Under the pieces are notes generated by a model. The model was not told where the DNA came from. It saw only the letters and a program-made list of their open reading frames with translations, and ran no database searches. Made by a program: the position numbers and the translations under genes. A stretch of 64,000 bases of DNA from Oculina patagonica. Lineage: Eukaryota. The DNA is taken from contig NC_135760.1 of NCBI RefSeq assembly GCF_052425735.1, positions 19,158,001 through 19,222,000 of the forward strand, in the 5' to 3' direction. Of the stretch, positions 8,287 through 56,881 are shown piece by piece (within the stretch, counting starts at the first letter, position 1; every line of letters begins with the position of its first letter).

Positions 8287-11200
8287 GTAATGTACCCAAG
8301 CTGCTAAATCGGTTCTCTATCGAAGCCTGAAATTTGCAGACTGCAGACTAAAGAGTATTCCATTACCATTATTGAGAGCTACCGTAACTTGAACAGGCCA
8401 AGCGCAGTGCTATCAAGGCTAACCGGAACGCTATTTGGGCTAACCGGAGTGAAGGTCTGCAAGTGCTTCATCGGTCACAAATGTACATAGCAACGATATT
8501 ATTAAACAGTAAATAAATCTGAAGTTGCTTAGACCTTCGTGTCCCCCTTCGTACCCCCTCTACTAACTATGGTATACGTTTAGAGACGAAGGATCGATTG
8601 AGGAACAAAAGTAGGAGAGTCTGTGAGTTTGTAGAACTGAATGTCAAATCATTTTCTCTATAGCTTATGTTAAAGTATACTTACCATAAAAGGTAATATA
8701 CGAGACACAGCCAAGCATGGGGAATATCTGAGTATTCCCCTAATTTTTCAAAATTATATTTTATGTTCGCATAAAAATTTTAAACGCGTGCAAGAATAGT
8801 ACTTTATATTTACTTTATTTTATAGCATATTTACAGCTTTGGCTTTCTTACCCCAAGCAGTTAGCCTCCATTTGGCTCAAAAACATGAACGGAATTTGGT
8901 CTTTAGACATTTTCTGTTCAACGAAGCTAACAGTCAGTCCTTGAGTTTCGTTCTTGGAAAACTGTTGTACATATTTTTGCGACCGAAAGTTTTATTAATT
9001 TTGAGAGTTAACAAAATATTTGCTTATTGCCTTTCACAGGCTCTCAAGTTGAATTGTTTCTGGAGAAAGAACTGCAGCTGATAAACAAATACCGCTTGAT
9101 GCACGCTGCTGCTCCTCTCCAGCTCTCTCTCGACCTGACCAACAAGGCCGAGTTATGGGCCACGGAACTGGCCAATCAGGACAAAGAGAAAATTGACGTG
9201 AACTCTAAATATGGTCAGAACATTTTCTCGACCAAGGAAGCTAACGACGCTGTTACCAAAAGCGTGCAAACGTGGTACAATCAAATCAGATTTTACGATT
9301 TTCACAGCGCCAAAGGATCGCTCAAGTCATCTTATTTCACGCAGCTGGTGTGGGTGGGCTCCCAGTCAGTCGGGATAGGAAAGGCGCAGAGTGCAAGTGG
9401 GAAAACCTTCATTGTGGCTCTGTTTGATCCTCCTGGAAACAAGGGAAACTATCTGCATAACGTGTTGCCGGTTACAGGTAAGAAAAGCATGTTTGAGGTA
9501 TATTGACAAGGTAAAGTTTTTAAGATAACTGTCGAGGTTTGGTATGAAAAAGTGATGAAAAAACTCTTACAGTAATACGACTTGTAAAACCATCGTGGTC
9601 TTGAACCAAGTCCGTTATCATAGCTTTCCCAAATGGTTAGCGACAGGTCTCAATCCCTGACCAGAAAAAGTGAACTCAAGACTTTTTGGATTGTTAGAAG
9701 GCAGTCTTGATAAGCAGTCTTGGCTTACAAAGATTTCCGGGAGGCGTTTGTTACGCAAGCACGTAACAATATGTGTCAAATTGTAAGCTCAAAGACTCTT
9801 CTTTCGCAGATTTAGAGTTAATTGGGTAAACAAAATGGGAAGGGTATTGATGCAGACATCGATCCCTGGGTACTGTCTTCATAAGTGCATTCTTAGTTCG
9901 TAGACTTGTAAGACACTTTACCCTCTCTGTGATTTTCTTTCCGTCGTGGGTAACCTGCGGTGACTCCACTTCCATCACATCTTGATGAGGAGTAGTCATA
10001 ATGCAAGTTGCTTTAGCTTTTATGCTAAGGAGGAAAGTAAACTGAATTTTCACTAATTAGTTGGAAGCTGGTTGAAAGGGTTGGCAGCAATGCTTTGCCC
10101 GTACACCGACGTTCGATTGCTTGCCCATCATTAAAGGAGCAACAAGTTCTAGCCATCATATGCAAAAGAGCTCCTAAGTCAGCAAGCAAAGTGTCTGTTA
10201 AATAGACTGACAACTTGCCACAATCTTCGACTGGTAGTCCTTTAAAATTCGGCAGCTGAAAGAGAATTTTCCACAGTTCTGAAGAAAACATCATTTCTTA
10301 TTACACCAATTAATAATGCTTTATCTACAAATTGAGTCTACAGCTGTCAGTTAAGTTGTACGTTTCTGTTTCATAGCATAGTAAGAACAGATTGAAAAGG
10401 ACAATTCATAGAGGAATACTAAGCCTATTTCTTAAAAGTCTCCTAAACTACCGCTGCGTAGGAGACTAATGACTAATGACGTGCAACCTCGTAACCAGGG
10501 TCTTCGTGCGCAGTAAGGAACGAAACTCGATGTACGAGATTGTAATTAAAATGACGTGACAAGCGTATGTAAATATGCCTTTTCATGGACCAGTGCGTGT
10601 TCGTCACACACCTTTCATTAGTAATAGAATATTAAACAAGATTCTCGTGTTACGACCAGCAGGCCACTTTTTCTAGCTTTACTCATGAAGGTCATTTGTG
10701 CAGGACATGGAAAAACGGGCACTAAATCAATTGCCAAAGCTTTGCGGCACCTTGGGTTTACGGTATTTGACTGGGAAGAGCAGGCCTTTGACTTTCTGGA
10801 TCATTGGGTCGATGTTTTCCAAAATGGCACCAAGCCAGATGTGAAACGAGTTTACAAGAATGCTGATGCAGTCGTGGATTTCCCAGGAGCCTTTTTCTAC
10901 GAAGAAATACTGGAAGCTTTTCCTGACTGTAAAGTGCTTCTGAGCGAACGAGAGGAAGATTCGTGGATAAAAAGCCTTGTGCGTCAACTGGAAGCGATTT
11001 TTGCCGACCGATCCCAGATTCGATCCATGCTATCGCCAACAACGAGGAAAATGGATTATATTTTGGACTCCTACATTACTGCCACCATTGGCTCTTGTAA
11101 TACAAAGTCCACCTATGTTTTCAGAAAGCGATATCGTATCCACAACCACCGTGTTAAGTCGACTGTTCCCGCTGACAAGCTGTTGGTGTACAACGTAAAA

Positions 11201-14200
11201 CAAGGATGGAAGCCATTGTGTGATTTCTTGGGGTGCGAGGTCCCGACTGATCCCTTCCCACATGAGAACGTCAAAGCTGAAATTAGCAAGACGGCGTTGC
11301 TCATAAGCAGATGTGGCCGGCAGATAAAATGGGAAATGCTGAGAGGTCTTTTGGCAATCGGTTCAGTTCTTGTAATGATTGTAGCAACATTTCTGGCGAT
11401 CTGTTTGAATCAGTAAAATTGACCTCAAGGTAACTAACAACAATGACTTGTTTATTATGCTTTATTCATGATGTTTAGTTTGTTTATCCGATAAAGAAGT
11501 TGTGGCTCATTTAACTTTTTCGTGTATTGTCAGTTCATGAAAAGACTCTCTAAAAACTGGAAGCGTAAATTTAGCCTTAAAGTTCATCGTGTTCATTTTG
11601 TGTAATTGTCGTTAAATTTTAGATGGCTCTGATCCCCCTTCGAATAAGGTTTCTAAACTTTGCACAAATTTGATGTTCTATTAATCACAACAATAAAACC
11701 AGTGGTCATCGAGCTTTTTCTTGAGTGACAAGCACAAATTTGAAATTAAAATTGTGGGTATCTTAAACAGGTTATACTGTTGCTATGGTAAACTTAGGCT
11801 CGATTTCCGCCGTCTTCTCGGGGCTCATTGTCCCAAAAAAAGCGGCTGGGAATCGAGCCAATGGTAAACTGTTATGTCACAACAAAAATGACCACAACTT
11901 GTTCAGTGTGTTCACCAGTGATTGGGTATTTGTTTGACACCATTTTTGTGGCATTGGCTTGTAAAGAGTGGTGGCATTTTTCCATTAAAGTATTGGTGTC
12001 CGTCTACTAATTTTTAACTTCAAAACATTTAATCTTCAACAATCCTTTTTTAACAAATTTTATTAATCCTTTGAGAAAAACTATCTCCTCCCAAACACCC
12101 CCCACAATAACCAAAAAATTTACAAAACACCGCAATACATAATTTGGTGCACAGGTAATGAGCAGAGAGTTCTTATTTTCGGGGGACTTGTCAAAAAATC
12201 GCGAAATTAAAGACCTGCGGAAACGTATTTTTAACGTTACATAATAAGGTGAGGAGACTAATGGCGTGACATAGACCTGTATATAGATTTTGCTCAGCAA
12301 CGTTTTGGTAACGTTAAGTGTTTCGAGCAACCTTTTGTACGCAACCTACTGAGAACAAATGAGCCATCTGATGTATTAACAAACAAAATGAACTCAAAAT
12401 CTGCAGTTGTTTTGATTGCGCAGTAAGGAACGAACATGTGAACGAAGATTGATGACGTGACAGAAAGCTTGTGCAATAACACATACTGCAAATGTGCCTC
12501 AGTTTCATGGACCAGTGCGTGTCAGTCACTAGTAATAGAATATTAAACAAAATTCTCGAGTTACACGCGAAGCAGAAAATTACGGCCTTAAATTGGACAT
12601 CGCATCAGCGGAGCAGGCAATTCTTTTTAGCTTTACTCATGAAGGTCATTTGTGCAGGACGTGGAAAAACGGGTACTAAATCAATTGCCAAAGCCTTGCG
12701 GCACCTTGGGTTTACGGTATTGACTGGGAAGAGCAGAGCTTTGACTTTATGGATCACTGGGTCGATGTTTTCCAAAATGGCACCAAGCCAGATGTGAAAC
12801 GAGTTTACCAGAATGCTGATGAAGTCGTGGGTTTTCCTGGATACTTTTTCTACGAAGAAATACTGGAAGCTTTTCCTGACTGTAAAGTGATCCTGAGCGA
12901 ACGGGAGGAAGATTCGTGGGTAAAAAGTTTTGTGCGTCAACGGGAAGCGAGTTATGCCAACCGATCCAAGATTCAATCCCTTTTATCACCAACATTTAGA
13001 AAAATGGCGTACATTATGGATTCGAATTCCCACATTACTGCCATCAGTTGCTCTTTAAACCCCAAGTCCACCTATGTTTTTAGAAAGCTATTTCGCATCC
13101 ACAACCACCGTGTAAAGTCGATTGTTCCCGCTGATAAGCTGTTGGTGTACAACGTAAAACAAGGATGGAAGCCATTGTGTGATCTCTTGGGGTGCGAGGT
13201 CCCGACTGATCCCTTTCCACATGAGAACGTCAAAGCTGAAATTAGCAAGACGGCGTTTCTCGTAACCAGATGTGGCCGGCAGATAAAATGGGAAGTACAG
13301 AGAGGTCTTTTCGCAATCGGTTCAGTTCTTGTAATAATTGTAGCAATCTTTCTGGCGATCTGCTTATATCAGTAAAATTGACCTCAAGGTGACTAACAAC
13401 AATGACTTTTTTATATTTCTTTATTCATCATGTTTAGTTTGTTTTTGATCCGATAAAAGAGTTATACCGCATTACGAGGTCTCATTGTCAGTTCGTAAAG
13501 ACTCTCTAAAAACTGGAAGGGTAAATTTATCATTAAGCTTTATTCGTTTTCATTTTGTGTAATTGTTGTAAATATTTTAGATGGCTTTGATCCTCGAACA
13601 AGTATTTTAAACATAACAAACATTTGTATCGTACTATGCTAATCACAACTCGACAATAAAACTAGTGGTCATAGACCTTGTTCTTGAATGACAAACACAC
13701 TCACATTTTGAATCATTTTGGGGTGTCTTTGACAGGTTATACTGTTGCTATAGTAACCCGCCAAAGTGACCACAACTTGTTCAGTGTGTTCACCAATGAT
13801 TGGGTATTTGTTGGATACCATTTTTGGTATTAACTGTTAAAGAGTGGCAGCATTTATCCGTCAATGTATAACAGTTGGAAAATACTGGAAACCCTTACCA
13901 ACCACATCTAAATAGGAGGATTCAACATGGTGGATGGCCAAAATGAACCATTTGTTACGATACCTCCTCCGAAGACCTCAGAAAAGAAGATTCATGGGTA
14001 AAAAGATTTGGAATGAAAAGGGACGAAATTTGTGCAGGAGCCCAAAAAGAACTGAAAGCGGGAAGGCCCAAGCTTATTCTTTTATTCTGTTTAGCGCAAT
14101 CGAACAGAAATCAAGTTTAATTTAACAAGACATCGCTGCGTAGAACACAAGAGCAAAATACTTCCGAGCAGTTAGAATGGAACACTACAATGTATAAACG

Positions 14201-17200
14201 AAAGAGACTAATTATATATGATGGAATCTATTAGATTTCGTAGACAGAAATTTCTAATTCATATAATATAAAGGGACGCTGTGAGCAAGAGACCGCCGGT
14301 TTGACCTTTCTCGCAGCTCAAAAGCTTGCTCGCGCGTATCGCATGTCGTTTATCCGTGATATCACACTACAGTATAACGCAATATTTGTTGAGACAACAT
14401 AGGGACATCTACAAAAAATATAAAAATATAAAATAAAATATTACTGTTGTTCAATTGAGCAAATCTACGAAGAAAATGTATTATTTGCATCCTTGGTCTG
14501 TGAATTCATAACAACTGTACTTATTTGAATTCCACCAGATCCTCAGGCTATGCAATGCTACTTATACAATCACTAACAAGCTTCTTATGTTTCAAAAATG
14601 TAAGCTGCAGTTGGATAACAGTCTTTTTCACACACAAGGTGTCAGCTAAGGTGTCAGACCCCTTGTGAAACGCCATCGCTTTTGCATGCATCGCGTGCCA
14701 TTTTTCTTTAAGAGCTAACGTTTAACACTATGCTCCAGGAGGGGCAGGATGACATGCGCCACAACGAGAATCAAAAGGCCCTCAAGCTGCCTCGTGGCAC
14801 AATGTTGCCCGAGTGAAATTGGTGAAAGCGAACAGCTGTTTAAAGAAAATTTGAGACTTTTCACCCCAAATGCAATTTCCTCCTTGGACCTCCACTCAAC
14901 TAAAACTAAAATTTATTTGTCCCATTTGGTGGTACAGATCATAGTTAGGCGGCGAATTAACGATCTTATTTAATATTCCAGTTAGTTGAAAAAGCAATTA
15001 GTTTAGCGTTTTTATTTTTTAACCTTGATATAGTTTTAATGTTTTTATCTACTAGTTTTAATGTTTTATTTACACACGACCCCACAAGCTATGTAGCTTT
15101 TTTATCCCATCGTGTATAAATAAAGGTTTTTTTTTTTTGATTGATTGAAAAGAACAATCCGTGAACTGATCGGACTTAGGCTTAATTTACACGGGACCGG
15201 ACGGGAATCATTTAGATTGGAGTAGACAACTGCTCTTTCAAAGACCGGGAGCTCTGATGAAAACATTTGATCATATTAACACATGCATGTATAAGTTGCA
15301 CACTACAAGTATTAAATTTTTATATCGAGGAAATATAGTTCTTTGGCTAAATTCCAGAGGCAGTACCAGCTTCTTCGGTCATGAAGTTACATGCCTTGTG
15401 TAAATCATCATAACAGTAAAAGCGAGTCAAAACAATGCGAAAATATTCTACTTCGTTTTGTTGCAAATGCACAGCCATAAATGCAGATATTTACAATAGC
15501 AACTGGTGAAGAAATTAAAATAATTTTATTGGCAATCTGTGACCCAACAAACAGAGACCACACAAACAGAGAATGGCAAACTTGTGCTTTGACCGATGGT
15601 ACATACGGGGGTGGGTGGGGAGGGGGCGGGGGCGGGGGGTAATAATGTTGCCACTGACAATATGTACGCATTGTCATAACCTGCAATTAGGCGTTAGTTC
15701 TCGCGGCGGTGTAGTTTAGCATTGTCATGGATCAGTGCGTAAGTGTTCGTGACTAGCGCGTAACACGAGAATTAATAAAAACAACGACCGGTATAAACTT
15801 GACATCACACCATACATGCGAGTTTTGTGCCATATACTTTGATCATGAGGATCATTTGTGCAGGATTACAAAAAACGGGTACTAAATCAATCGCCAAAGC
15901 CTTGCGGCACCTTGGGTTTACGGTATTTGACTGGGAAGAGCAAATCTTTGACTTTGTGGATGACTGGGTCGATGTTTTCCAAAATGGTACTAGGCCAGAT
16001 GTGAAACGACTCTACCAAAATGCTGATGCAGCCGTGGATATGCCTGGGTGTTTTTTCTACGAGGAAATACTGGAGGCGTTTCCTGACTGTAAAGTCATTC
16101 TGAGCGAACGAGAGGAAGAATCGTGGATAAAAAGTTTTGTGAATCAACTAGAACTGGTGGATGCCGCTCGATCCAAGATTCGGTACATGCTATCGCCAAC
16201 GTCGAACAAAGTGAGGTATATCACGGACTCCTATTGGTACGCTGCTTTTGGCTCTTGTAACCCCAAGTCCACCTATGTTTTCAGAAAGCGATATCGTATC
16301 CACAACCACCGTGTAAAGTCGATTGTTCCCGCTGACAAGTTCTTGGTGTACAACGTAAAACAAGGATGGAAGCCATTGTGTGATTTCTTGGGGTGCGAGG
16401 TCCCGACTGTTGCCTTCCCACATGAAAATATCAATGCTGAAATTTCTTCGACGATCCTCATGACCAGATATGGCCGGCAAATAAAATGGGAAATGCAGAG
16501 AGGTGTTTTTGCAATCGGTTCAGTTCTGATAATAATTGTAGCAACATTTCTGGCCATCTATTTAAATCAGTGATATTTAGACTCGATTAGACTCGCATAG
16601 TGAATAACAACAATGACGTCTTCATTAAACTTTTGTTTATTCTTTTAGTTTGTTTTTCATCAAAAAAAGTTATACCGCATCAAGAGACCAAAGTCAACTT
16701 TTTCTACATTGCCAGTTCGTAAAAAAAAGGCTCTCTAAAACTTGCAGCGTAAATTTAATCATTAAGGCTTAAAATAGTTTTTTATTTAAATCTGGCCATA
16801 AGTGACCAAAAACTTCTTCAGTGTGTTCACCAATGATTGGGGCTCATTTCATACCATTATTGTAGCAATTACTAATAAAAGGTGTCCTAACACTGCTCCA
16901 TCAAAGTATAAGGGGGGGAGTTTGAAAATGAAAACATCCGCATGTTCTGAGAGAAATAGAGGGAATCTAGGCGAAGTTTTTCGTTTTGAAAAAATTGTTT
17001 TAGGATCACCGGCTGTTAACGAAAGTGTTTTAGGAAAATCGTCCGCCATTCCGGTTTGTTTGTCTGAGTCATGACGTCACTCGTGCGCTTCGCTATTCTT
17101 TGTATTCACATGACGTCATCAAAGTTCTTAAATCCAAAATCAAACGGTCCCTAAGGACCCTAAGCTGTATTAAATTTTTCATTGGCTATAAGACTTTCTA

Positions 17201-19796
17201 AATATATATTTTTTCAAAGGTTTTTCAGCTCGATAACATCCTTCGATAACATCTCGATAACATCCTAACATCCTTCCTTCAGGCCTTTTGAATTTCGGAG
17301 TTTTACACCACAAGATACATTCAATAATAGTTACAATAGCAATTAGTTAAGAAATTTAAATTATTCAATTGGCAAGCTGTGACACAAACAATGGATGGTA
17401 AGCCTGTGGTTTGACCGTTACGCACCAGGGGAGGGCTCATGCTACCGCTGACGTGATACGTACGTGTTGTCATGGATCAGTGCGTAGGTGTTCGTGACTA
17501 GCGAGTTATATACACATGAGAATAAACAAAACGACGTGAAACTTGAAATCAGAGCATAAAAGCAAGTCTTGAGACACATACTTTCAACATGAAGATCATT
17601 TGTGCAGGATATGCAAAAACTGGTACTAAATCTATCGCAAAAGCCTTGCGGTACCTTGGGTTTACGGTACTTGACTGGGAAGAGCAAATCTTTGACTTTG
17701 TAGATGACTGGGCCGACGTTTTCCAAAACGGCATCAAGCCAGATGTGAAGCGAATTTACCAGAATGCTGATGCAGTCGTGGATATGCCTGGAACCTTTTT
17801 CTACGAAGAAATAATGGAAGCGTTCCCTGACTGTAAAGTGCTTCTGAGTGAACGAGACGAAGATTCGTGGATAAAAAGTTTTGTTAATCAACTGGAATCG
17901 ATGTCTGCTGGACGAACCAAGATGTCGTATATGCTCTCGCCGACAGCGAGGAGAGTAAGATATGTCGTGGACTCGTATGGCAACGCTCTTTTTGGCTCGT
18001 GTAACCCCAAGTCGACCTATGTTCACAGAAAACGATATCGTATCCACAACCACCGTGTAAAGTCGATTGTTCCCGCTGACAAGCTGTTGGTGTACAACGT
18101 AAAACAAGGATGGAAGCCATTGTGTGATTTCTTAGGGTGCGAGGTCCCGACTGATCCCTTCCCACATGAAAATATCAAGGCTGAAATCACCGAGACACTT
18201 TCCAAGACTAGATATGGCCAGCAAATAAAATGGGAAATACATAGCGGTTTTTTTATAATCGGTTCAGTTCTTGTAATAATTGTAGCAATATTTCTGACCA
18301 TCTGTTTATTTAACTACAGTGATATTGACTCATGAGTAAATAACTGATAACAGTGATGTTTTTATAAAACTTTACTAATCATTTTTAGTTTGTTTTTAAT
18401 CCAATTAAGATGTTATAAGGAATTACGAGACCTAATTCAATTTTTTTTATATATAGCCTTATCGTAAAAAAAGACTTTCTGAAAACTTGAAGCGTAAATT
18501 TCATCATTAAGTTTAAATTTTTAATGTGTGTAAATTAATTCACGTTGCTACTCATTGCGTGCCAACAACGCAGGCAGCATCCGCCTTCATTTCGTACAGA
18601 ATTTACGAGTATGGTTCAGCAGAGATCACGTTTACGCACATATATTGGGTATACAAGCATAAAAACTAAAAATAATGCGTCCTTACTCAAATGAGATCTT
18701 AAATAAATTCGGTCACGAAATTGTAAAGAGTCAATTATCACACAACTCTTTAATCCAAATAAAGGAAACACAAATCTTTTAGAATACCTTTGTTGTTGAC
18801 GTGAGCAGAATGAAACACCAACGCAGTCATTTAACATGGCAGGTAGAGAGGGTCTCAATGGGGTGGGGGCTTTTACGGTTAACGGTTAAAATTTTGGCCT
18901 TTTTACGGCTAACGGTTAATTTATTTCCATTACGGTTAACAGAAGTTAAAAGTTAATTTTCATTGTTTTTAATAGTTAAAAATCAATTTCCATTATTGAA
19001 AAACGTATTTTAGGTCTTTGGACCATTTTTGGGACGATGAAGTAAACTAGTTTGGGTTATTTATAATCACTGACCGATTTTTACGGTTAACACATTTTAC
19101 GGCTAACGGTTAAAATTTTCCATTTTTTACGCCTAACGGCTAAATTTTTGGCCGTTTTACGGCTAACGGTTAACCCCATTGAGACCCTCGGTAGACAAAT
19201 TGAGCCATTTCGTAACTAGCCGGACGCCCACTCTTACAAGTGAATCTTATGCTCTCAAAAAAGGCGCGAAAACTTAAATCTTTTTAAATATTAAAATATT
19301 TGTGTGGCGACCCAAAAGGTTCTAAAGCGGGTTGTCCTAGACTCGTTTTCTCTGAAACCTTATGGTTTTGGACAGTTCGTTGATCGACGCCACAGCACAA
19401 GAAACCACATAGTAACAAAAATCAGAGTCGGATTATAATATTTGCCTATGGCATTGGGTTTTTTGACGCGACCACTTAACAAGTCGTCACGCCTCCCTCC
19501 CCCTTGCCCCTTGCCATCCTGCAGTTCTTCAAGTCACAGCGACATAAAATAAGCTGGCCACTACACAGCGACTTCACAGGAATCCCATGGTACACTGCTG
19601 TCTGTATCCACGGGAACTGTCCACGACACAGGTTCACTATTAGTATGCCCTCATTGCCAAAGGCTCTCTTAATTCTTATGCCATATCCTTAACATTAGTA
19701 TTCCTTATTCGGCCTAGCCATCAGTGCACAGTTTTCATTTCTGCCTTAAGTATCGAAATACTTAATGAAATGCTCAGTGACCTGGCCTTTGAATGG

Positions 19797-19827
<31 letters not shown>

Positions 19828-22800
19828 CAGACCTCACTGCTTTTGTTGTGTTAATCATGTTGTTTTGATGCAAACTAGTTTGCATTTACATAATAAAGGA
19901 GAGAGGTTTGTATCAATGCAAGGTCACCTCCAGCCTCACTACCATTCAAAGGCCAGGTCACTTGGCAGGCAACTGTAAAATGGACTATTGACACTTTCTT
20001 TCACTGCACACCGCTTTCGACAAGGCTGTGTACGATCTCTGTGACTTTCTCTTCTGGATCTTCTGGCTGTGGATTTCATGATGTTCGCGCGATTGCTTTC
20101 GGAGTACTCGCAAGCGTTCACCCAAGTTTTTGATTGGATGAAATAAGTCGGAAACTCTTCGAGTGCTTGAACGAAGATTGGAAAAACTTGCACTTGTTCC
20201 CCCGACTGACGGTCCATGTGCAAATTTTTTACTATGAAAAGGAAAAGTCAAAAACGTGTAATTATACCGTGGTTCTGTCTGCTTTGTGTTAAACCATATT
20301 CGTATTTTCGGTATTAGACTGGAATTATCTTGCAATGGAAGCTAATGCGGGGGGATATCATTAAAAAAGCTTCATGTCATTTGCGTTTGAAAAGATCCCC
20401 TGCATTAGCCTCCATTGCAAGCTAGTTCCAGTCTAATTAATTAGTATTATGCATGGACTGTTAATTAATAGTTTATTTTGTATTAATTTTTATTATAACT
20501 TACTAGAATCACCTGATGTTTTTACCGTGTATAAAGAATTGTTAAATAAAATAAATAAAATAAATAAACAAATAAATAAACTAGTTCCAGTTCAATACCG
20601 AGAATACGAATATGGTCTTTTATAACAACCCGAGAATGCGGCTTGTTTGTCTTGTAAATTCCTATTTGCCTTTTTTCATCTTTTTTTCTTTGACAATGTT
20701 ATTGTAATTGGTTGTACATGTCTATAAAGAGGAACAATAGCATAGAGCGAAAGTAAGTGTTCGTCACATAGGCAACATTCTAGCTGAAAAAGAATTTTGC
20801 GCAGAAAAAGAATACTATTACAGTAAAAATCCGAGCCAGAACAATAAAAAAGAACGGTAAAACATATTAAAGAAACGGAATTGAAAAATAAATTTAAGAC
20901 TTAGTTGACATGACTCTTTTGAAAAGCTTGTGTTTACAAATTACAGGTATACAGATCATGTATGCCTTGTAAATGCACGTAAACTCGGGGATACATTTTC
21001 ATGGATCATTGTGTTATCACACAAGCGAGTTAAACCAAATAAAAAAAAGACGAGTAATTTGACATCACATAAGGGGAGGAGACCATTTGTGTTGGATATG
21101 GAAAAACCGATAGTAAATCCATTGCTAAAGCTTTTCTTTACACTGGGTTTACGGTATTTGATTAAAAAGAAAAAAATGTCATTACAAGAAGCTTAAGAAT
21201 TATTTATTAACATGAATAGGAATGCAAATGTACAGTACACAAAATCCCTATTCATCAATCAGTGTGTTAGACGTGGCATGTTCTTAGGGAGGTACACCGA
21301 GCGAGTAGCTTGACCCGGCAGCAGTAAAGAAACGAACAGAGGTCAAAGACAGTTTTCAAGCTTTACTCATGAAGATCATTTGTGCAGGATATTCAAAAAC
21401 AGGCACTAAATCAATCGCCAAAGCCTTGCGGCACCTTGGGCTTACGGTATTTGACTGGGAAGAGCAGAGTTTTGACTTCCTAGATCACTGGGTCGATGTT
21501 TTCCAAAATGGAACCGTACCAGATGTCAAGCAAGTTTACCAGAATGCTGATGCAGCCGTGGATCTGCCTGGGTGCTTTTTCTACGAGGAAATACTGGAAG
21601 CTTTTCCTGACTGTAAAGTGATCCTGAGCGAGCGAGAAGAAGATTCATGGGTAAAAAGTTGGGCTCGTCAACTAGCATCTATATTAGCTACACGATCCGA
21701 GTATGTGGCCATGTTGTCGCCATCGTGGAGGAAAATGTGGTACGTTTATAATTCCTATGCTGAAGCCGCTCATGGCTCTAATAACCCCAAGTCCACATGT
21801 GTTTTTAGAAAGCGATACCGTATCCACAATCACCGTGTAAAGTCGATTGTTCCCGCTGACAAGCTGTTGGTGTACAACGTAAAACAAGGATGGAAGCCAT
21901 TGTGTGATTTCTTGGGGTGCGATGTCCCGACTGTTCCCTTCCCACATGAAAATATCAACGCTGAAATCACTGAGACACTTCCCATGACCAGATGGGGTCG
22001 GCAGGTGAATTGGGAAGTACAGAGAGGTTCTCTTGCCATCGGTTCAGTTCTTGTTGTAGCTGTAATAACTGGTCTGGCTATATATTTTAGTAAGTGACAT
22101 TCGGCTCAGAGTGAAAACAAAGACTTCTTGTATTATTCCTTAAAATATTAAAGATACTTGAGGGTCAGTGGTTTCTCCTTGATGGTTTCGATTCTAATTT
22201 GAGTTACGTCGCATTTAATTCTACAGCTCATTCAACAAAAATTGTCAGTTCAGCAACAACTCGGTTCAAACTTTACTTGTTAATTTCATTATCCCTTTTT
22301 TCAAAAATTAATGCATGTCATTCGATGTTTACTGCGTTTCCCTTAACGATTTCAAAAACCTTATTTATTCAATAATTCATGAATCCAGGGACTAATTAAA
22401 TCATGGACAATACAACACGTGTATGAGTTTCATATTGGCAAAATACCCCTTATTAGTATTTTTATACAATGAAAGGATACTAATAAGGCCAAGGACAAAC
22501 GCTTTTCTAACCTTATTGATAAATGTTACCAATACCGCCCAAAACTGAAAACCAGCCTGAACACTTTTTTAGGGTTAGAATTTTTAAAGCTATTTAATAT
22601 TTATTTTACCCATAGGCAAAGCGCATATTTAATCCTATTGTGCTGTCACTGTTTTTAAATTCTGTTTTTTTTAATCTGAATTTTGACTTGATAATGGAGC
22701 AGGTAGCGTAGAACATTCTTGGACTCTGATAGCTTTTGTAGATTTTAAGAACATTCTGGCCTTAATAAAAAACCTGTTACAAAAATCTTTTTCTCATTAC

Positions 22801-25800
22801 GGTGTCCATCTAGAATTAGATAAAAAAAACAGCAGTTTGGTTATGTTTACATATTTTAATTCGTAGATCGCGCGTATACACCCGCTAATTAAAGGGTGAA
22901 AGGTAAAGCCTGCTGTCGAGCCAAGTGGCTCATCAGGCCGGAGCTTATCCCGGTTTCTGTAGCATTAAGCGGCTCGGAGTATTTCTACTCCCCCCTGGAT
23001 GGGATGCTAGTCCATCGCAGGGTTACCCCTCAGCAGTAAATTTGCCGGTAACCCGTTATAAACTTGGGTGGAGAGAGGCACTATGAGAGTAAAGATTCTT
23101 GCATGCCCAAGAACACAATGCAGCGCCCTGGCCAGGGCTCAAACTGGGGCCGTTCGATCCGGAGTCCGGTGCACTAACCATAAGGCCACCGCGCCTCCCA
23201 CCAAACGTCAGCCCTCTAACGTCCTCAAGACCCAAGGAATTACATTAAGCATTCCAGAAAAAACACCTGGATACCTATAAAGTTCCAAAAGTAAGAACCC
23301 CTTCCCCTCTTCCGGCGGAAAGTAGCGACGTATCTAAACTATTGATAATTTTTTTTTGACAATTCCCGAATGTAGCGACCTTCTGAGTTTCAGAGAGCAA
23401 CTTCAAGCGTAATTTGACATGTTATGAGAAACAATGAGAATACAGATGCAACAAGCTGAAGTTTAACAATCAGTCAATCACAGTGGGTCTTTCCTTTTAG
23501 GACAAGGTCCGTGATTCGTGAGTGTGACATCCCCCCCCCCCCCTCTCCCAACCACCCTGAAAAAAGGTACTGTCATTACACTCATTAGACTCGCATAGAT
23601 TAAGGACTAGTTGTTCATTGAAATGTAAAATTCAATCGTTTTATGGCACATTGAGCCAATGTCAGTAGATATATTTGTTTAAGGTCCAATGAGTGACATT
23701 TCGAAAATATAACCGTCAGCCGTCAAATGCCGGCCCACAATTTAACCATCCATCGTCAAAAAGCAATGTTTTAAACTGTCAACCTTCAAAGGTACCTTTC
23801 CCCCATGGAGACCCTCCTATTCGCTCAATTATAGAAACTCTGGTGCGCTGACTAATTGGCAAATGGGAACCGATTGAAATGGAGGCAAAAATAATTAACA
23901 TTTATTGGACGAGGTCGAGCAAAGTATCGTGATTTGTCAGTAGCGAGCAGATCGATTATTTGTCAAAGCTGGCACTAACAAATAAAGATATTTTGGGACA
24001 GCTTACGTTGCTTGTGTGCAGTGTCGAGCAGTGAATATTCAAAGAACATGAATTAATATACAAAGTATGATAAAATTAATGATTAATTCGCCTTCAAGTT
24101 ATGAGATTGCTAGAGCTCCCTGACCTTACAATAAAGAAATATTAAGTTAAATTAGCCCTCGTATTATTTAATGCAATGTTATTCAAATTACAATCGAAAA
24201 ACATTGAGGAAAAAACCATCTACGCTCTAAGTGTCTTAGATATTTTAAGAATAAACAAAGACGTCTTTGTTTTAACTTTGAGTAGAGTGTCACTGATTAA
24301 AGCAGATAGCAAGAACAGTTATTACAATTATAACAAGAACTGAACCAATGGCAAAAGAACCTCTCTGCACTTCCCAATTCACCTGCCGACCCCATCTGGT
24401 CATGGGAAGCGTATCAGTGATTTCAGCGTTGATATTTTCATGTGGGAAGGGAACAGCCGGGACCTCGCACTCCAAGAAATCACACAATGGCTTCCATCCT
24501 TGTTTAACGCTGTACACCAAAAGCTTGTCAGCGGGAACATTTGACTTTACAAGTTGGTGGTTGATACGGTATCGCTTTCTGAAAACATAGGTGGACTTGG
24601 GGTTATGAGAGCCAAATTCGGCATCGACGTAGGCATTGTAAAGGTACCACATTTTCCTCCAAGTTGGCGACAACATGGCCACATACTCGGATCGTGTAGC
24701 CAAAATCGATGCCAGTTGACGGGCCCAACTTTTTACCCATGAATCTTCTTCTCGTTCGCTCAGAATCACTTTACAGTCAGGAAAAGCTTCCAGTATTTCC
24801 TCGTAGAAAAAGTTCCCAGGCATATCCACGACTGCGTCAGCATTCTGGTACATTCGTTCCACGTCTGGCCTTGTACCGTTTTGGAAAACATCGACCCAGT
24901 GATCTAAGAAATCAAAGCTCTGCTCTTCCCAGTCAAATACTGTATACCCAAGGTGCTGCAAGGCTTTGGTGATTGATTTAGTACCCGTTTTCCCAAGTCC
25001 TGCACAAATGACCTTCATGGTAAAGTTCAGCTATTAATGGTGGTTGTGCCTCTCTGCCGTAATGTCAACTTACATGTCGTTGTTTTTTTTTTCGTGCAAC
25101 TTGTCACGAACACGTCACTGATGCATGAAAAGACGCATTATTATTCATTGCAGCTACTATACTCTATTCTCATCGGATGAGAGCATTCCTGAGCTATTAA
25201 ATTCACGTTGACATCAAATTTTTATGTCATATCTACGGACAATAGGATTATACATGCAGAACTGATGTCATTTCTACAGATAACCTTGGAAGCTTTCTAC
25301 CTTGAAAAAAATATTGGAAAAATATTTATATTCCACGGTTTAATATTTGGTGCCTAACATCTTAAAAGTGGCACTTCGATTTCAATTTTTGGGATACCAA
25401 TCTTAGAAGATATATCAGTTTTCAAATGTTAGCTAATGTAAGAAAGGAATAATTTTCTACATTGGAATTTTATCTTTGCTGGTACTACACATTCACCTAG
25501 TGTATTTTGTGGCATTGGCTAGTCCTATCTATGTTTGCATATACGAAAAAAATCCTAATTACTTAGAGTATTAAGTCGAGTAATGTGGAGGGGGGGGGGG
25601 GGGGAGGGGCTCGTCAATGAAACATTGAATAAAGAGAGGGGCCACCTGCTCTTTTCAGGCCTGAGGAGGGGGTCCTGACGGACTGAATTTCTATCTTTCA
25701 TTATATTTTTCCCTACCCCCTCTACATAAATAATGACCGGTTCCTAATAGAGAACAGACTAGCATCGTGCGGAATCGTGCAAACGCCGCCTTTTTCTGCC

Positions 25801-28800
25801 TTGCCGTAGTCTGTCTTGCTTGTCAGTGAGAGAACGAAGCGATGACTGAATCATCCAGATTTGCCAAAGTAACGGAAAACTGTTTGGAAAAACTACTAGA
25901 TGATAAGGACGCAAAAACATAAACATTTCATACATCATTTTTGCAAGTTTTTGCTAAAATATTTGCCAGTGAATCATTGACATCAAAGTAGTTTACAAAC
26001 GTGTCTTTGACTGTTTTTCTTGTTTCGCCATCAAAAAATCGTGTGCCTTTTTAGCACTAACAATGTCTTATAAAACAATTATTTACACTCAGCATGTTCA
26101 TATAATATCCGTAAATGTTGCATAACCTTAATTTCCCGTTAAGCCTCGGTCAATTAATCGCTCGTGCTTTCCAATCTGTTTTTACTGTGCTATCCGACGC
26201 TATGAAGTCATATTTGACAACTGTCCTGCAAAATTGTGCGGATCGCGGAGTGCGGAATTTATGCCTGATACTTAGCTGAGGCCATAGCTGGCCGAAAAAT
26301 GAAAAATACGTTTTTGGTCCAGTATAATTTTTAAATCGTTTTTCGGCAACTCCGGAAAAAAATGTCACTGCAAGACGGTAATGTGCATGAGCAGATCATT
26401 ATTTGTTGGCAGTTAATTGCAGATCATTTTGTGGGCTCTCGGCTCGTCAAAAAAAGGAAAAAAAACATATGCATCGAAAGAAACCTTACGCTCTTTGTGT
26501 GCAGTAAATATTGAAAGAACATGAATTATGATGAAATCGATTATTTATTCACACTTTAGTTTTGAGATTCATAGAAAAAGCGGAATTAGCTATCGTATTA
26601 GAGCGGTTTTCACTTGAGTGTCGAAAGTAAATTGCGTTTGCTTTGGTTTTGCATTACTACGCTTAGTGATTGGCTTAAAAATCTCGCGCCACCTTCTCAG
26701 CCAATCAGGAGTAAAACCAAAACCAATCGTGACTCGCTCGCGCACAATTTCCCGCGCTTCGTGCCAGCTACATGTATTTGCTTCGAGTTTTGATTGGTTC
26801 ACTGGATTATCTGTGTCCTTTGTGATTGGCCAGAGTAATTACTTTGGTTTTGGTTTTACGACACTCAATTGAAAACCGCTGTCACAGGATGTTTTGCAGA
26901 AAATATTGCAAAATAAATAGTTAAATTAAATCTTGATTTAGTGGCTTTTAAGGTTTAGGTAATTAGTACCGAAACTTCTAGAAAATCTAAAATATACCAA
27001 AAATAACTATAAATTAAGATAGTGTTAATTGGTTAAGAAGGCGAGCTTAATATCACGTTTTTTATAGCCACTGAACTGAGGCACGGCCAGCGCCCATTTC
27101 TGCGCACTAAAGTGTTTTCTTGTATTTATTTAAGTTCTTGTCTTGTGATTTTTATGTCTTAATACCTAAGTTTAAGAATATTCGTGATTGTGAACGTGAG
27201 TTCAGTTCACTGATAATGGAACTAATATATTTTGATCTGTCAACCATGGGACATCGTGTCTCAATCTTGTCATATACTCCGTGAGAACTACTTTTGCTAA
27301 TACCACCAAAACCCCTTCGGCAACCGAAATGACGCAAGAATGTATCTTAATGAATGTATGATCCATTAGCAACTAGGGAAAGATAATTTAAAAGATATGC
27401 ATGTTAATAAGCAGCTAAAAAACATATATAAGCAACGCTGTAAAACTAATAATTTAGAAGAAAGTTGAAGGAAGAAGGAAGATAGAACTTGTGAGACAAG
27501 AAGCTTGAGGAAGGAAGCTATAGATGGAAGTCAAGACTCGAAGAAAGTAATTTGTAAGTCAAGACGTTGGAAGAAGAAGGACAGAAGAACTGACGTTAAA
27601 GAAAAAGAACTAGATTGTGAGTTATACTTAACAAATAAACCTATAGTTCAATCTTCACGAGTCAGAGTCGCTTGCTGCACGACAATGGAGTACAAGCTCT
27701 AAGCTAATCCCCGCCGGCAGTAAAAGCACCCTTTAACACTGGTGCAGAATCGAATGTCGACAAGCAGCCTGCGACCAACGAAGCAAACCAAAGGAAGAAA
27801 CAAAGAAAAAAGCGACAAAAACTGGATAATCTAACGAAACAGACGATTTCATAGAAGAAGAAGCCTATCTGATTGCTGCAATCAGATTAGAACTTTTAGA
27901 GCTCACGGATGGAGAACTTTAAGACACAGTGAACTTTCTCAAGAGGCTGGAACATTTTTTTTCCAAGAGGCGGACGACTGTTTAGATAAGTTAGATATAT
28001 TCCATTTAAAGATTGCTATTTAGCTTTAACTGTACTTAGTTAATTAGTTATGCCATTTTTCCCTTGCCATTTTCGCTGTTTTCAACTCGTGTTGTGTATC
28101 GTAATGTTTTTGTTTTGGTGCCGTGCATGAAGCATGCAGCATCGAAAGGCGTTACCACGCGAAGTCAAAGTAAAACGTTTTGTCACGGCAACTGCCAAAA
28201 TCCTAAAAGAAAAACGGAAAAGATGAGCGATCACGAGGACGAAGTTTCTCAGAACGATATGGCGGAAACTATGAGAAAATTACAGCGATTGTTTGTTTGT
28301 CAGAATGAATTTTTTGAAGTGACATTGCATGGTATGCAGGCAGCGATTGATAAAGTTGCATCTCCAAATTTGAAATCATCAGTCAAATTAGAGCCGTTTT
28401 CTGGCTACGAAAACGAGGACGTAAACCGTTTCCTCGAAAAATATTTAAACCGCTTAAAGGCCAAAGACGTTCACTTAAGTCCCGAAGCAAAGGCCGCCGA
28501 TCTAGCGAGCCATCTGAGAGGTCCAGCCGAAACGTGGTATTTTTCCCTTGATCGGTTTATACGAAATGATTTTGACAGTCTTGTCCGTGTCCTAAGGCAA
28601 CGATTTTCTTCGGACGATTTTAAATGGCGTCTCCGGCAGTCACTAAGTTCGCGCAAACAAGGACCCAATGAATCCTTGGATTCTTATATTGAATTTATTA
28701 ATAGCACCTGCCAACGATTGGGCGTGCCGCAGCAGGACCAAATGCATTATTTCGTGCAGGGATTGCGCGACGATATTAAGCGAGAAGTGTTAATGCACAA

Positions 28801-50815: not shown

Positions 50816-51297
50816 TATTGGACGGCTATGTATGGGAGCTATGTGCTGCAGAATTAGCAAAAATTGTGCGGATCTGTGGGGAATGTATCGAGTGGTTGAC
50901 CTAGCTGAGGCCATAGCTGGCGGAAAAATAACACGATATTCCGCAAGATTGAGCAGGATAATTGTTTTAATATTCAACAAATTGACGACCAATCGCATCT
51001 TTACAGCTAGATAAATATAGCGCTGGCGAATTTAAGGTCAAACCTTCCATAAGCGGGGCCCCTTTGGGCTTCGTCTAGGTGTCCGCATACGAGATATGTT
51101 CAACCCTTTTTTGGGCCGTTCCTTAACAGAGATTTAATTTTAGTACTCAATAAATTATATGTATAGCTAATATAGCTAAAACTGGACGACACGACAAGAG
51201 TTTTTTTTCATCGTGTGGTAAATTAAATCGTTCAGTCGTAGTGAGTCTTTCCTTCGTAGCTGTTTACTTAACAATTAATTATTTCGTTCTTTTTCAG

Positions 51298-53673: not shown

Positions 53674-53768
53674 CATTATATTGCGCCCGCGATCGTGGCC
53701 TTCAGTGAATAACCAACGACTGAAAACCAATCAGATTCGCGTTTATAAGTTACGCAATTTTCACTGCG

Positions 53769-53857
53769 TTTCAATCAGCATACAAGGAATTTCACTCAAC
53801 TGAAACAGCACTTCTTAGAGTACAAAATGACATCTTGTGTGCTCTTGATCAAAACAA
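53769..53857 (+). mobile_element. Non-LTR retrotransposon (L2/CR1-type) RT fragment
   Basis: [29 protein letters not shown]. Confidence 0.75.
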
Positions 53858-54455
53858 TATCTCTGGAGAAAGACAACGAACGAGTTAGAGAACTGGAAGA
53901 AAACGACAGTGAACATGTGATCATATAGCGCGCAATTCTTCCTCGAAAAACGCTTAAAGATTGTACTGAGAGATTGGCTTCTGGTCCGTGAAAAATTTTG
54001 TCTTTGGCCTTACTAGTTGTCAGAGTGAATTAATTCCTTAAACAAATTCCACGAACAAACTTCTTGAGCAAAATCCTTTAATATCTATGGTACATTGAGT
54101 AGACACACGACGCGTTCTAATTCTAGAAAAATCCAACAAAAGAACCCTGAACGACTTGGTTACAAGTGCCAATCAATCTATTTTTAAATGCTATCCAGAA
54201 CAGAAGCCATGTTCGAAAGTCACGTCATTCGATTTAAGAGTTCACGCGATGAGATCATTTTGTAACACTTGTATCCATTTTGAATAAAATACGTATAAGG
54301 GGTGTTTTACCAGACAATACCGCAGAAAAAGTTGAATTAGCCCTAGTATTAACTGCAATGTAACTCAAATTGGAATCGAAAAAACACACTGCGGCAAATA
54401 GTCTCCCTCGCAGCCGTTTTTAGTGTCGTCACAAAACGAGACTATGCGGCGAGTG

Positions 54456-55322
54456 TCATTGATTAAAACAGATAGCAAGAACAGTTATTACAATTATTAC
54501 AAGAACTGAACCGATTGCAAAAACACCTCTCTGTACTTCCCGATTCACCTGCCGACCCCATCTGGTCATTGAAAGTGTCTTACTGATTTCACCTTTGATA
54601 TTTTCATGTGGGAAGAAAACAGTCGGCACATCACACTTCAAGAAATCACACAATGGCTCCCGGGGGGGGGGGGGGACTCGCATATGAAAGTGACGGGGAT
54701 GCTCGTCGTCTCGCTTAGGGGTGTAAATTTCGGACTTTTGGTCTCGCTTAGGGTGTTCCGGAAAAAAACGCCCAAAACGCCAATATTTTTAGCCATAATG
54801 GTCTCGTTTAGGGTTACACACGAAGAAATATACAAATATAAACTCCATTCTTAGTTTTTTTGTATCTTTTAGGGGTCAAGAAAGGCTTGAGCCACACCCA
54901 GATTGGTCTCTTTTAGGGGTTCTTTTCAAAATTTCCGACGAGCATCCCCGTCCGTTTCATATGGGAGTCCCCCCCCCCCGGGCAATGGCTTTCATCCTTG
55001 TTTGACGTTGTACACCAACAGCTTTTCAGCGGGAACAATCGACTTTACACGGTGGTTGTGGATACGATATCGCTTTCTGTGAACATATGTGGACTTGGGG
55101 CTACAAGAACCAAAGGCAGCGTCCCAATAGGAGCCCACGATATATTTCACTTTCTCCGCTGTCGGCGATAGCATCTCCACCTTGGATCCTGCAGCAGAGT
55201 CCGATTCTAGTTGATTCGCAAAACTTTTTACCCACGAATCTTCTTCCCGTTCGCTCAGGATCACTTTACAGTCAGGGAAAGCCTCCAGTATTTCTTCGAA
55301 GAAAAAAGTTCCAGGCAGATCC
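54456..55322 (-). pseudogene. Sulfotransferase-like copy 12, 5'-truncated and MITE-interrupted
   Basis: Homology starts at DLPG (55322); a MITE is inserted at 54659-54982 within GxKPLC. Confidence 0.85.
54659..54982. mobile_element. MITE with CCCG(G)n termini and 8-bp TSD
   Basis: CCCGGGG..GACTCGCATATGAAA...TTTCATATGGGAGTCCCC..CGGG flanked by CAATGGCT. Confidence 0.9.
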
Positions 55323-56152
55323 AGATCTGAAATTAAAGGCTCTTCTTTTTCAGCTTTAGAGCTAAGATAGCAAGGTGGTAGGGGTATATGCAGACGTCAT
55401 GTCTCCTGTTAGTGTAGTCAGAATATGCTGAAAGCCCCCCCCCCCCCCAGCCCCTTTAAAAGTAGGATTAAACATGGTGGAAGGTCTCCCAGAAGACCTC
55501 CGTGTGGAAGATTCGTGGATGAAACGTTTTGGAATGAAAGCTAGTACAGGAACGCAAAAAAATTAGAAGCGGAGAGGCCCAAGACTTTTTTTCTTCAAAA
55601 TCTGTCGTCTAACGCTGTGGTTCAGGACACACGCCAAACATTAACGAGAATCAAAAGACCTTAAAGGCCGCGTTAAATTTATGGCGGTCTGTATTAGTAT
55701 TCGTTACGTTATAAAAAGACAAATATTCGTTATACAAAGAAAAGTGTTTGTTATATAAAGGTCTTTATTAGTATTCGCTACCCATAGTTAGTTAGTAATT
55801 TTTATTAGTATCTTTTTTGTGTTTTGTTTACGTCAACAAGGGGTGTTTTACCAGTAAAATTCGCATGCACATAATTAACGAATTGTCCATGATTTCATCG
55901 GTGAGTTAATTCATGAATTATAAATAACCAAAGGTTTTTGAAGTCGTTCAGGAAACCAGTGAACATCGAATAACATGTATAAATTAAAAACGATGATACA
56001 ATTCGAAGAGATTCGTTTCTGGACTGACAATACCGCAGAAAAAATTGAATGAGCCCTAAAATATTAAATGCGATATAACTCAAATTAGAATCGAAAAAAT
56101 TGAGGAGTAAATCCATCGGATTAATAGCTTTGTTTTCACTTTTAGGCGAGTG

Positions 56153-56881
56153 TCATTGTTTAAAACAGATAGCCGCGACGATTATTACAATTATTACAAG
56201 AACTGAACCGATTGCTAAAACACCTCTCTGTACTTCCCAATTCACCTGCCGACCCCATCTGGTCATGGGAAGTGTCTTAGTGAGTTCAGCATTGATATTT
56301 TCATGTGGAAAGGGGACACTCGGGACATCGCATCCCAAGAAATCACACAATGGCTTCCACCCTTGTTTTACGTTGTACACCAACAGCTTGTCGGCTGGAA
56401 CAATCGACTTTACACGGTGGTTGTGGATACGATATCGCTTTCTGATAACGCATGTGGACTTGGGGTTATGGGAGCCATGGGCGGCATCAGTGAAGGAGTT
56501 ATAAACGAACATCAATTTCCTCCATGTTGGCGATAACATAGCCACATACTCGGATCGTGTAGCCAATAACGATTTCGCTTGACGAGTCCTACTTTTTAAC
56601 CACGAATCTTCCTCTCGTTCGCTCAGAATCACTTTACAGTCAGGAAAAGCTTCCAGTATTTCCTCGTAGAAAAAATACCCAGGCAGATCTACGGCTGCAT
56701 CAGCATTCTGGTAAACTCGTTTCACATCTGGTTTGGTGCCATTTTGGAAAACATCGACCCAGTGATCTAGAAAGTCATAGATCTGCTCTTCCCAGTCAAA
56801 TACCGTAAACCCAAGTTGCCGCAAGGCTTTGGCGATTGATTTAGTACCCGTTTTACCATATCCTGCACAAATGATCTTCAT
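56153..56881 (-). CDS. Sulfotransfer_4-like protein (copy 13)
   Basis: Intact 242-aa paralog. Confidence 0.85.
   Translation of the reverse strand: MKIICAGYGKTGTKSIAKALRQLGFTVFDWEEQIYDFLDHWVDVFQNGTKPDVKRVYQNADAAVDLPGYFFYEEILEAFPDCKVILSEREEDSWLKSRTRQAKSLLATRSEYVAMLSPTWRKLMFVYNSFTDAAHGSHNPKSTCVIRKRYRIHNHRVKSIVPADKLLVYNVKQGWKPLCDFLGCDVPSVPFPHENINAELTKTLPMTRWGRQVNWEVQRGVLAIGSVLVIIVIIVAAICFKQ

Follow-up and report, generated by a model that had tools for sequence, protein, structure and literature searches.

A tandem array of Sulfotransfer_4 genes in the coral Oculina patagonica with a probably diversified acceptor pocket

A 64,000-nucleotide (nt) stretch of the genome of the coral Oculina patagonica (NC_135760.1, positions 19,158,001 to 19,222,000; hereafter the window) harbors, between its positions 10685 and 56881, 13 related segments (tblastn with one copy as query), comprising nine intact single-exon open reading frames (ORFs) of 240–248 amino acids and four broken copies. 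The encoded proteins belong to the Pfam family PF17784 (Sulfotransfer_4), and the array is probably a birth-and-death family of 3′-phosphoadenosine 5′-phosphosulfate (PAPS)-dependent small-molecule sulfotransferases whose acceptor pocket has been diversified by positive selection, giving the copies different specificities. A diversified binding site in a duplicated enzyme family is a familiar pattern of detoxification-type families, met here in an uncharacterised coral family. The surroundings of corals are chemically rich, and the animals harbor algal symbionts; to our knowledge, their conjugation enzymes are barely characterised.

Family, fold and conserved scaffold

The copies match the full PF17784 profile in hmmscan (E~1e-56), with scores for three copies of 190–194 bits against a cut-off of 22.8, over profile positions 1–214 of 215. 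The domain is present in all relatives found, the family comprises 8688 clusters at E<=1e-3, and it appears to be widespread in stony corals. Among the >560 close relatives, which include proteins from Acropora digitifera and O. patagonica, annotation is restricted to 'hypothetical' or 'uncharacterized'. A few relatives are longer: one from A. digitifera (P0002, 420 amino acids) has an extra PF23187 domain fused to the sulfotransferase domain, and two others (P0121, 403 amino acids; P0141, 578 amino acids) have additional N-terminal regions. An AlphaFold2 model of the copy starting at 21369, which also serves as the numbering reference, was built on 99 diverse relatives and has a predicted local distance difference test (pLDDT) score of 97 and a predicted template modelling (pTM) score of 0.90. 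Its best Foldseek matches are Cpz8 (template modelling (TM) score 0.87), SgdX2 (TM 0.85) and the Schistosoma sulfotransferases; the top 19 (E<1e-10) are all sulfotransferases of the PF17784 family, with TPST, 3-OST and NST among the remoter ones. Sequence relatives in the PDB are the same proteins, namely Cpz8 (9KF1), SgdX2 (8Y9P) and the Schistosoma oxamniquine sulfotransferases.

Across 99 diverse members of the family, K/R10, S/T15, D65, R89, S97, H153, G174 and W175 are each at least 90% conserved, with the K/R10–S/T15 loop residues, R89 and S97 reaching at least 96% and position 153 being His in 93 of 99. The same residues are invariant in the nine intact copies, except for His153 in the copy at 24290 (g24290). 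Thus, the 5′-phosphosulfate-binding loop K10-T-G-T-K-S15 and the 3′-phosphate pair R89/S97 are present and unchanged in 9/9 intact copies. Asp65, also invariant in these, aligns with chain residue 93, that is Asp91, of the Schistosoma enzyme SmSULT, which hydrogen-bonds the acceptor hydroxyl and has been described as catalytic (PMC4618941, PMC7167500). A cytosolic sulfotransferase of the SULT1/2 type (PF00685) was considered and rejected, since hmmscan at E<=0.01 returns PF17784 only and the catalytic position holds Asp, not His.

The protein opens directly with strand 1 (MKIICAG); neither an N-terminal signal nor an N-terminal anchor was found, and the only hydrophobic segment occupies the C-terminal ~20 residues (a stretch at ~221–239 followed by two polar residues), where the model has a continuous helix from 208 to 241. 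A hydrophobic C-terminal tail is common to many animal relatives. Given this C-terminal helix and the absence of an N-terminal signal or anchor, the coral proteins are predicted to be tail-anchored in the membrane with the catalytic domain facing the cytosol. A Golgi type-II sulfotransferase was rejected for want of an N-terminal signal-anchor.

Variable positions, recombination and selection

The original prediction was that the copies vary at focal positions on a nearly invariant scaffold, and this is confirmed, with a few corrections. Its almost fixed stretches are borne out by 121 of 242 columns being invariant among the nine intact copies (mean column identity 83%), and they correspond to the cofactor scaffold: the K10-T-G-T-K-S15 loop, strand 83–87 followed by R89...S97, and the HN...VPxDxLLVxxVxxGWxPLCxFL block, which are also the most conserved columns family-wide. 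All ten dipeptides that it had listed for the motif AG-xx-KTGTKS are found (HG at 10685, RG at 12639, LQ at 15845, YA at 17589, YS at 21369, LG at 24290, QG at 31629, FQ at 34473, FP at 46365 and YG at 56153). The RG dipeptide is indeed there, but 12639–13375 is not an intact array copy; it is a frameshifted pseudogene with Gly in place of the catalytic Asp. Likewise, every listed form of the D-x-P-x-x-F motif occurs, although position 68 within it is Gly in nearly all members and ranks only 145 of 215 in entropy. Residues ~97–140, described as strongly variable, do differ between copies at many positions from 98 to 135, but as a block the region 97–138 has a ratio of non-synonymous to synonymous divergence (dN/dS, ω) of 0.60–0.70 with segment-specific trees, with dS roughly doubled, and is not uniformly selected. 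Focal sites 34 and 209 emerged here in addition to those named earlier.

To the nine window genes we added ten from a second coral (European Nucleotide Archive (ENA) ERZ25067872), seven from its syntenic array after the CAP-domain gene and three from dispersed loci, giving a set of 19 genes from two species. Over all pairs of this set, identity is 0.22 at 14 focal sites vs 0.82 at the other positions of 1–215. The 30 most variable of 215 positions in 114 coral homologues include 8, 9, 34, 66, 69, 98, 103–114, 120, 124, 127, 130, 131, 134, 135, 138, 201–206 and 209. Because the same positions are among the most variable ones in this wide sample, the variability is a property of the coral family and not an accident of nine genes. 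Along helix 118–135 it recurs with the period of an α-helix (moment 0.75, p=0.0002); positions 120/124/127/131/134–135 make up the variable face, where mostly hydrophobic residues ranging from Gly to Trp are found.

The acceptor site was located by homology, using a family-profile alignment to ShSULT and SmSULT together with published Sm/Sh equivalences (PMC7167500). Seventeen residues have been listed for the oxamniquine site of SmSULT (PMC12414012). On the coral numbering, Pro16 corresponds to 9, Met38 to 30, Phe39 to 31, Ile42 to 34, Asp91 to 65, Leu92 to 66, Val127 and Val128 to 101 and 102, Ile140 to 110, Gly143 to 113, Asp144 to 114, Leu147 to 117, Phe153 to 123, Thr157 to 127, Met233 to 200, Leu236 to 203 and Thr237 to 204. 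An earlier map made with a nine-gene profile, which had placed Phe39 at 28, was replaced by this full-length family-profile alignment (Phe39 at 31, Ile42 at 34). The variable sites 9, 34, 66, 113/114 and 127 thus align with published oxamniquine contacts. Contact-homologous positions have a mean entropy of 1.57 vs 0.73 elsewhere (114 coral homologues; Mann–Whitney p=4e-4), and 8 of the 17 rank within the 30 most variable of 210 positions (p=7e-4). A fixed-sites codon model with segment trees, in which the 17 positions formed a class set in advance, gives them ω=0.81 vs 0.42 for the remaining positions (2ΔlnL=24, p=1e-6); the former value exceeds that of all 30 random 17-site sets (maximum 0.70). 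That the contact set as a whole does not rise above 1 is due to its inclusion of invariant residues such as Asp65.

Recombination has made the paralogs mosaic. The pairwise homoplasy index (PHI) test gives p<0.0005 for their alignment, and a search modelled on genetic algorithm recombination detection (GARD) prefers four to five segments, with breaks at codons 96/97 and 138/139. In approximately unbiased (AU) tests, none of the four segments accepts a tree from another (all cross-segment comparisons p<0.004, the majority <1e-4), and a Sawyer-type run test identifies an exchange tract between the copies at 17589 (g17589) and 34473 (g34473) at codons 149–179. For the nine genes, the tree of segment 97–138 has a length of 5.7 vs 1.7 for codons 1–96 and 1.5 for 139–204, that is 3.3–3.9x longer. 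This is not confined to amino-acid changes: dS at amino-acid-identical codons is 0.63–0.70 in 97–138 vs 0.27–0.38 elsewhere, with 0.70 vs 0.27–0.34 for the nine window genes, an approximately two-fold synonymous excess that led us to reject an artefact of multi-hit codons. The four-fold sites at invariant residues gave no dS excess in 97–138, with only five codons of this kind available. About half of the excess divergence of this region is also synonymous, and therefore much of it is not specifically non-synonymous. Scaffold codons 1–96 and 139–204 have about half the synonymous divergence of both 97–138 and the non-coding flanks, which are ~57–63% identical and thus nearer the central segment, and this pattern suggests conversion tracts confined to the conserved gene parts.

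Selection was assessed with our own likelihood program (GY94/F3x4), whose M0 result equals that of iqtree2 GY+F3X4 to four decimals (lnL -3592.90, tree length 2.587); site posteriors (P) are naive, not Bayes, empirical Bayes values, and the partitioned fits kept branch lengths in their M0 proportions. Pairwise dN averages 0.146 and dS 0.391, and no 20-codon window exceeds ω=0.72. With a single tree for the nine genes, models allowing a class of sites under positive selection are strongly preferred (2ΔlnL of 36.9 for M1a/M2a, 40.2 for M7/M8 and 37.6 for M8a/M8), ~6% of sites having ω≈4 and sites 8, 9, 69, 120, 124, 127 and 131 reaching P>0.9. A likelihood-ratio test for heterogeneity among sites is significant as well, and the pattern goes beyond chance. 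Such single-tree models were rejected as sufficient evidence because PHI and AU tests reveal mosaic genes, and the analysis was redone with segment-specific trees. For the 19 genes and four such trees, the M1a/M2a comparison still gives 2ΔlnL=30.1 (p=3e-7), with 4.9% of sites at ω=2.9; P exceeds 0.9 at sites 9, 34, 69, 106, 120, 124 and 209 and is 0.6–0.8 at 8, 66 and 131 (0.63–0.73 at 8 and 66). A class of ~5% of codons at ω≈2.9–4.5 is therefore supported, and with 19 genes it survives segment-specific trees; the variable sites are not a set with dN/dS at or below 1 lying away from the active site. Together with the enrichment at contact-homologous positions, this ω>1 class supports, at the level of sequence, the proposed diversification of the acceptor pocket. 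A further 45 sites are under purifying selection in per-site tests of the fixed effects likelihood (FEL) type.

One combination of focal residues has been kept across species. In a joint tree, g17589 clusters with three second-coral genes (bootstrap 92–99) and has 11 of 14 focal residues in common with its closest relative, B55003, and 10 of 14 with B14266; the residues kept are YA, I34, MPGT, F98, S113, A120, R124 and V127. The ratio dN(focal)/dS is 0.33–0.39 between g17589 and its closest second-coral relatives (dS 0.34–0.47), as opposed to 1.3–8.3 in several paralog pairs within one species whose dS is similar or lower. Because the focal set was picked for its variability, the absolute ratios are biased upward, but comparing cross-species with within-species pairs remains informative, and the difference fits change after duplication followed by constraint.

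These observations can be accommodated in a mechanism in which PAPS would be held by the invariant scaffold while Asp65 would deprotonate the acceptor hydroxyl. The walls of the acceptor cavity would be formed by residues 8–9 at the mouth of the phosphosulfate loop, by 34, by 66 and 69 after the catalytic Asp, by helix 196–209, and by three cap helices (91–107, 111–116 and 118–135), and it is mainly in this wall that the copies would differ. A unit of ~1.3 kb would have been duplicated, with part of the array becoming inverted and copies being lost or pseudogenised, and exchange between paralogs would have made and reshuffled mosaic genes. Positive selection on ~5% of codons, concentrated in the cavity, would then have made the pocket different in each copy, after which it would be conserved within a lineage. 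The presumed outcome is a set of enzymes sulfating different small acceptors, such as xenobiotics, dietary or symbiont metabolites, or endogenous lipophilic compounds.

Alternative explanations and related systems

Several results weigh against pocket diversification by selection. With segment-specific trees, the nine-gene M2a test drops from 36.9 to a 2ΔlnL of only 7.5 (p=0.02), and P stays above 0.8 at sites 9 and 69 alone, joined by 8 and 34 in a five-segment version. FEL-type tests with free synonymous rates find only site 135 (p=0.02) among the 19 genes, and none of 8, 9, 34, 66, 69 and 124 is individually significant, a lack of support that we attribute to low power with 19 genes. Within-segment recombination and multi-nucleotide mutations could inflate ω. 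Only 3 of 10 M2a sites fall exactly on a contact-homologous position (p=0.04), and the three-dimensional placement derives from homology and not from distances, with the register in 98–117 uncertain by one residue. Hydrophobicity is not significantly higher at the most variable positions than at those of moderate variability (0.62 vs 0.50, p=0.30) and was accordingly dropped as a pocket indicator. PAPS use and small-molecule acceptors are, moreover, extrapolated from distant relatives with 21–31% identity.

Part of this evidence would suit relaxed constraint, under which the cap region and a few loop positions would tolerate almost any residue and redundant copies would drift without meaningful change in specificity. 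The ω of region 97–138 is below 1, that of the contact set is not significantly different from 1 (p=0.10), the per-site tests lack significance, 4 of 13 copies have already become pseudogenes, and in one intact ORF a conserved His is shifted. We nevertheless consider this explanation unlikely: M2a and M8 outperform M1a, M7 and M8a, which already include a neutral class, the focal residues of g17589 are kept in other-species relatives at dS 0.34–0.47, and the variable positions are limited to one helical face and contact-homologous sites. A further alternative lies in recombination itself, if conversion homogenised the scaffold and left an older central segment, so that both the focal variability and the ω>1 class would be by-products of wrong trees. 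The PHI and AU results, the raised dS at amino-acid-identical codons of 97–138, the flank identity close to central-segment divergence and the fall of the nine-gene statistic are all in line with this. However, the 19-gene test with segment trees is still strongly significant; sites 8, 9, 34, 66 and 69 belong to the scaffold segment with low dS and therefore cannot owe their variability to an older segment; and the scaffold motifs are conserved family-wide, bacteria included, so that purifying selection rather than conversion explains their constancy. An artefact of this kind is thus very unlikely. The case does illustrate how gene conversion may inflate selection tests on tandem paralogs.

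Equally far down the scale, and if anything a shade less probable, is the idea that the variable face contacts a membrane, a partner protein or an oligomer interface, so that the copies would differ in localisation or partners, not in substrate. The predicted C-terminal membrane helix, the largely hydrophobic variable face of helix 118–135, the placement of the pocket by homology, and the association of fungal PF17784 proteins with lipid droplets (bioRxiv 10.1101/2022.11.24.517872) would all be compatible with it. Yet positions 9, 34, 66, 113/114 and 127 correspond to residues in contact with the bound drug in Schistosoma enzyme crystals (PMC12414012), 66 and 69 flank the catalytic Asp, and 8–9 open the phosphosulfate loop.

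Beyond the diversified pocket, a more speculative extension, which we hold to be doubtful, is a 'conserved chassis, swappable pocket' arrangement: frequent exchange among paralogs would hold the cofactor scaffold constant and reassort segments of the pocket, with distinct signatures maintained by selection, yielding a stony-coral battery of membrane-anchored, cytosol-facing sulfotransferases tuned to lineage-specific chemicals. Were this true, dinoflagellate-symbiont metabolites, algal allelochemicals and sterols would be candidate chemicals, and the array would be an unrecognised arm of cnidarian chemical defence or symbiotic metabolite handling.

The closest characterised proteins are those of schistosomes and the bacterial natural-product enzymes Cpz8 and SgdX2, all of the same family and fold and with a like catalytic arrangement. 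The oxamniquine-activating sulfotransferases of Schistosoma (SmSULT-OR, 4MUA/4MUB; ShSULT, 5TIV; SjSULT, 5TIZ) share with the coral proteins the PF17784 domain and the fold (Foldseek E~1e-11), as well as the 5′-phosphosulfate-binding loop, the R...S 3′-phosphate pair and the catalytic Asp in a D-L/M-P loop (Asp91 = Asp65), and their drug-contact residues align with coral hypervariable positions. They differ in being soluble, in having longer cap insertions, in being encoded by one or few genes, and in having only 21–26% identity to the coral proteins, which are shorter, have a predicted C-terminal membrane helix and come from a tandem array. Cpz8 (caprazamycin, 9KF1/9KF2) and SgdX2 (sungeidine, 8Y9P), the best structural matches (TM 0.85–0.87, 29–31% identity) and also the best PDB sequence matches with the family profile (E 1e-59 and 3e-56), act on small-molecule acceptors, and Cpz8 also sulfates simple phenols (PMC11677658). 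Unlike the coral proteins, they are products of single genes in biosynthetic clusters, without a membrane tail, and no paralog repertoire is known for them.

In Acropora, clusters of cytosolic SULT (PF00685) and P450 genes have arisen by tandem duplication in repeat-rich regions (Ka>0.1, Ks~0.35), and a wider ligand range has been proposed (PMC12314368). These clusters were read as relaxed constraint, mean Ks being significantly above Ka, with no site-level analysis (PMC12314368). We considered whether that expansion concerns the same family and rejected this: its genes belong to PF00685, in which the catalytic residue is His, whereas the array described here is PF17784, with an Asp base, a predicted tail anchor and an ω>1 site class. 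Our literature search found no paper on PF17784 in cnidarians. The locus provides a small enzyme in nine natural versions, whose differences fall mainly on about a dozen positions predicted to belong to the pocket, and a solved homologue indicates the ligand site. Identification of the substrates would add to the understanding of xenobiotic and metabolite handling in cnidarians and would give a natural mutational map for Sulfotransfer_4 specificity, in the fold of the schistosome drug-activating enzyme.

Layout of the array and its surroundings

The intact copies start at 10685, 15845, 17589 and 21369 on the forward strand and at 24290, 31629, 34473, 46365 and 56153 on the reverse strand; with a leading block in one orientation and a second block in the other, part of the array has been inverted. 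Homology between copies reaches ~200 nt upstream and ~350 nt downstream of the ORF, which puts the duplication unit at ~1.3 kb. On the forward strand, the gene at 10685..11416 encodes 243 amino acids with HG at residues 8–9 and FPGA at 66–69 (ORF; PF17784 E=4e-56). It is followed by the broken copy at 12639..13375 (RG/FPGY; tblastn frames, pairwise alignment and translation), to which it is the nearest copy (89.5% nt identity in pairwise alignment) and which lacks 1 nt at codon 28, has gained 6 nt at codon 126 and shows the Asp65-to-Gly change (VVGFPG). Further along lie the intact copies at 15845..16573 (242 amino acids, LQ/MPGC; ORF, tblastn and protein alignment) and 17589..18335 (g17589, 248 amino acids, YA/MPGT; ORF and joint tree with the second coral), a short 5′ fragment covering codons ~4–34 at 21085..21177 (tblastn and pairwise alignment), and the intact reference copy at 21369..22097 (242 amino acids, YS/LPGC; ORF and Pfam).

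On the reverse strand, the ORF of g24290 (24290..25018, 242 amino acids, LG/MPGN; protein alignment) is intact, but a 3-nt loss and a 3-nt gain turn RIHNHRVKSI into RINHQLVKSN and shift His153 by one position; this copy may be impaired or becoming a pseudogene. Intact genes follow at 31629..32351 (240 amino acids, QG/LPGN; ORF and protein alignment) and 34473..35201 (g34473, 242 amino acids from the conserved ATG, FQ/MPVY; ORF and alignment), the latter in an ORF that continues upstream to 35273. The copy at 44730..45445 (LPGY; tblastn and pairwise alignment) is broken by one extra nt at codon 5 and one missing nt at codon 139, its nearest relative being the copy at 56153 (92.4% nt identity). 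The remaining segments are an intact copy at 46365..47093 (242 amino acids, FP/MPAN; ORF and protein alignment), a broken copy at 54456..55324 that is 5′-truncated, with homology from near codon 64, and is interrupted by 332 inserted nt at codon 175 (tblastn and pairwise alignment), and an intact copy at 56153..56881 (242 amino acids, YG/LPGY; ORF, Pfam and protein alignment).

In gene orientation, the octamer TTCGTGAC lies 63–99 nt 5′ of the start codon in 6 of 9 intact copies (at 15746, 17491, 25103, 32441, 35299 and 47156), and the whole window contains 9 hits vs 1.5 expected. Located inside the ~200-nt conserved 5′ flank, it may be a promoter or 5′-untranslated region (UTR) element.

The window has a GC content of ~40%, sparse ORFs and some retrotransposon ORFs, which mark it as eukaryotic. 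A CAP-domain ORF flanks the array at 9027..9506 (forward strand; PF00188, E=5e-16); the CAP-domain gene precedes the array in both corals and thus serves as the synteny marker. Copy number, orientation and pseudogene content differ between the two corals, and in the second (L001–L004 stitched, 62.8 kb) all seven intact copies are on one strand, as opposed to the partly inverted array in the window. Long interspersed nuclear element (LINE) and Ty3 ORFs are interspersed in both arrays; in the window, a Ty3-type gag ORF lies between array members at 28064..29323 (forward strand; PF03732, PF00098). The far-side flank of the array has a 269-amino-acid ORF with an RNase_T-type 3′–5′ exonuclease domain at 58657..59466 (forward strand; PF00929, E=2e-16).

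Two other features of the window were recorded. At 40907–42319, the forward strand contains a 470-amino-acid ORF rich in Pro, Gln and Tyr, with a local GC content of 49% vs ~40% and no Pfam hit; its C-terminus has the pattern C-x3-C-x3-C-x3-C-x3-CC, a cysteine spacing that we take to be that of the minicollagen-type domains of nematocyst wall proteins. At 1033–1664, overlapping ORFs on both strands are built of a 15-nt minisatellite (FTSPR/GLVKR repeats) and are probably non-coding repeat DNA.

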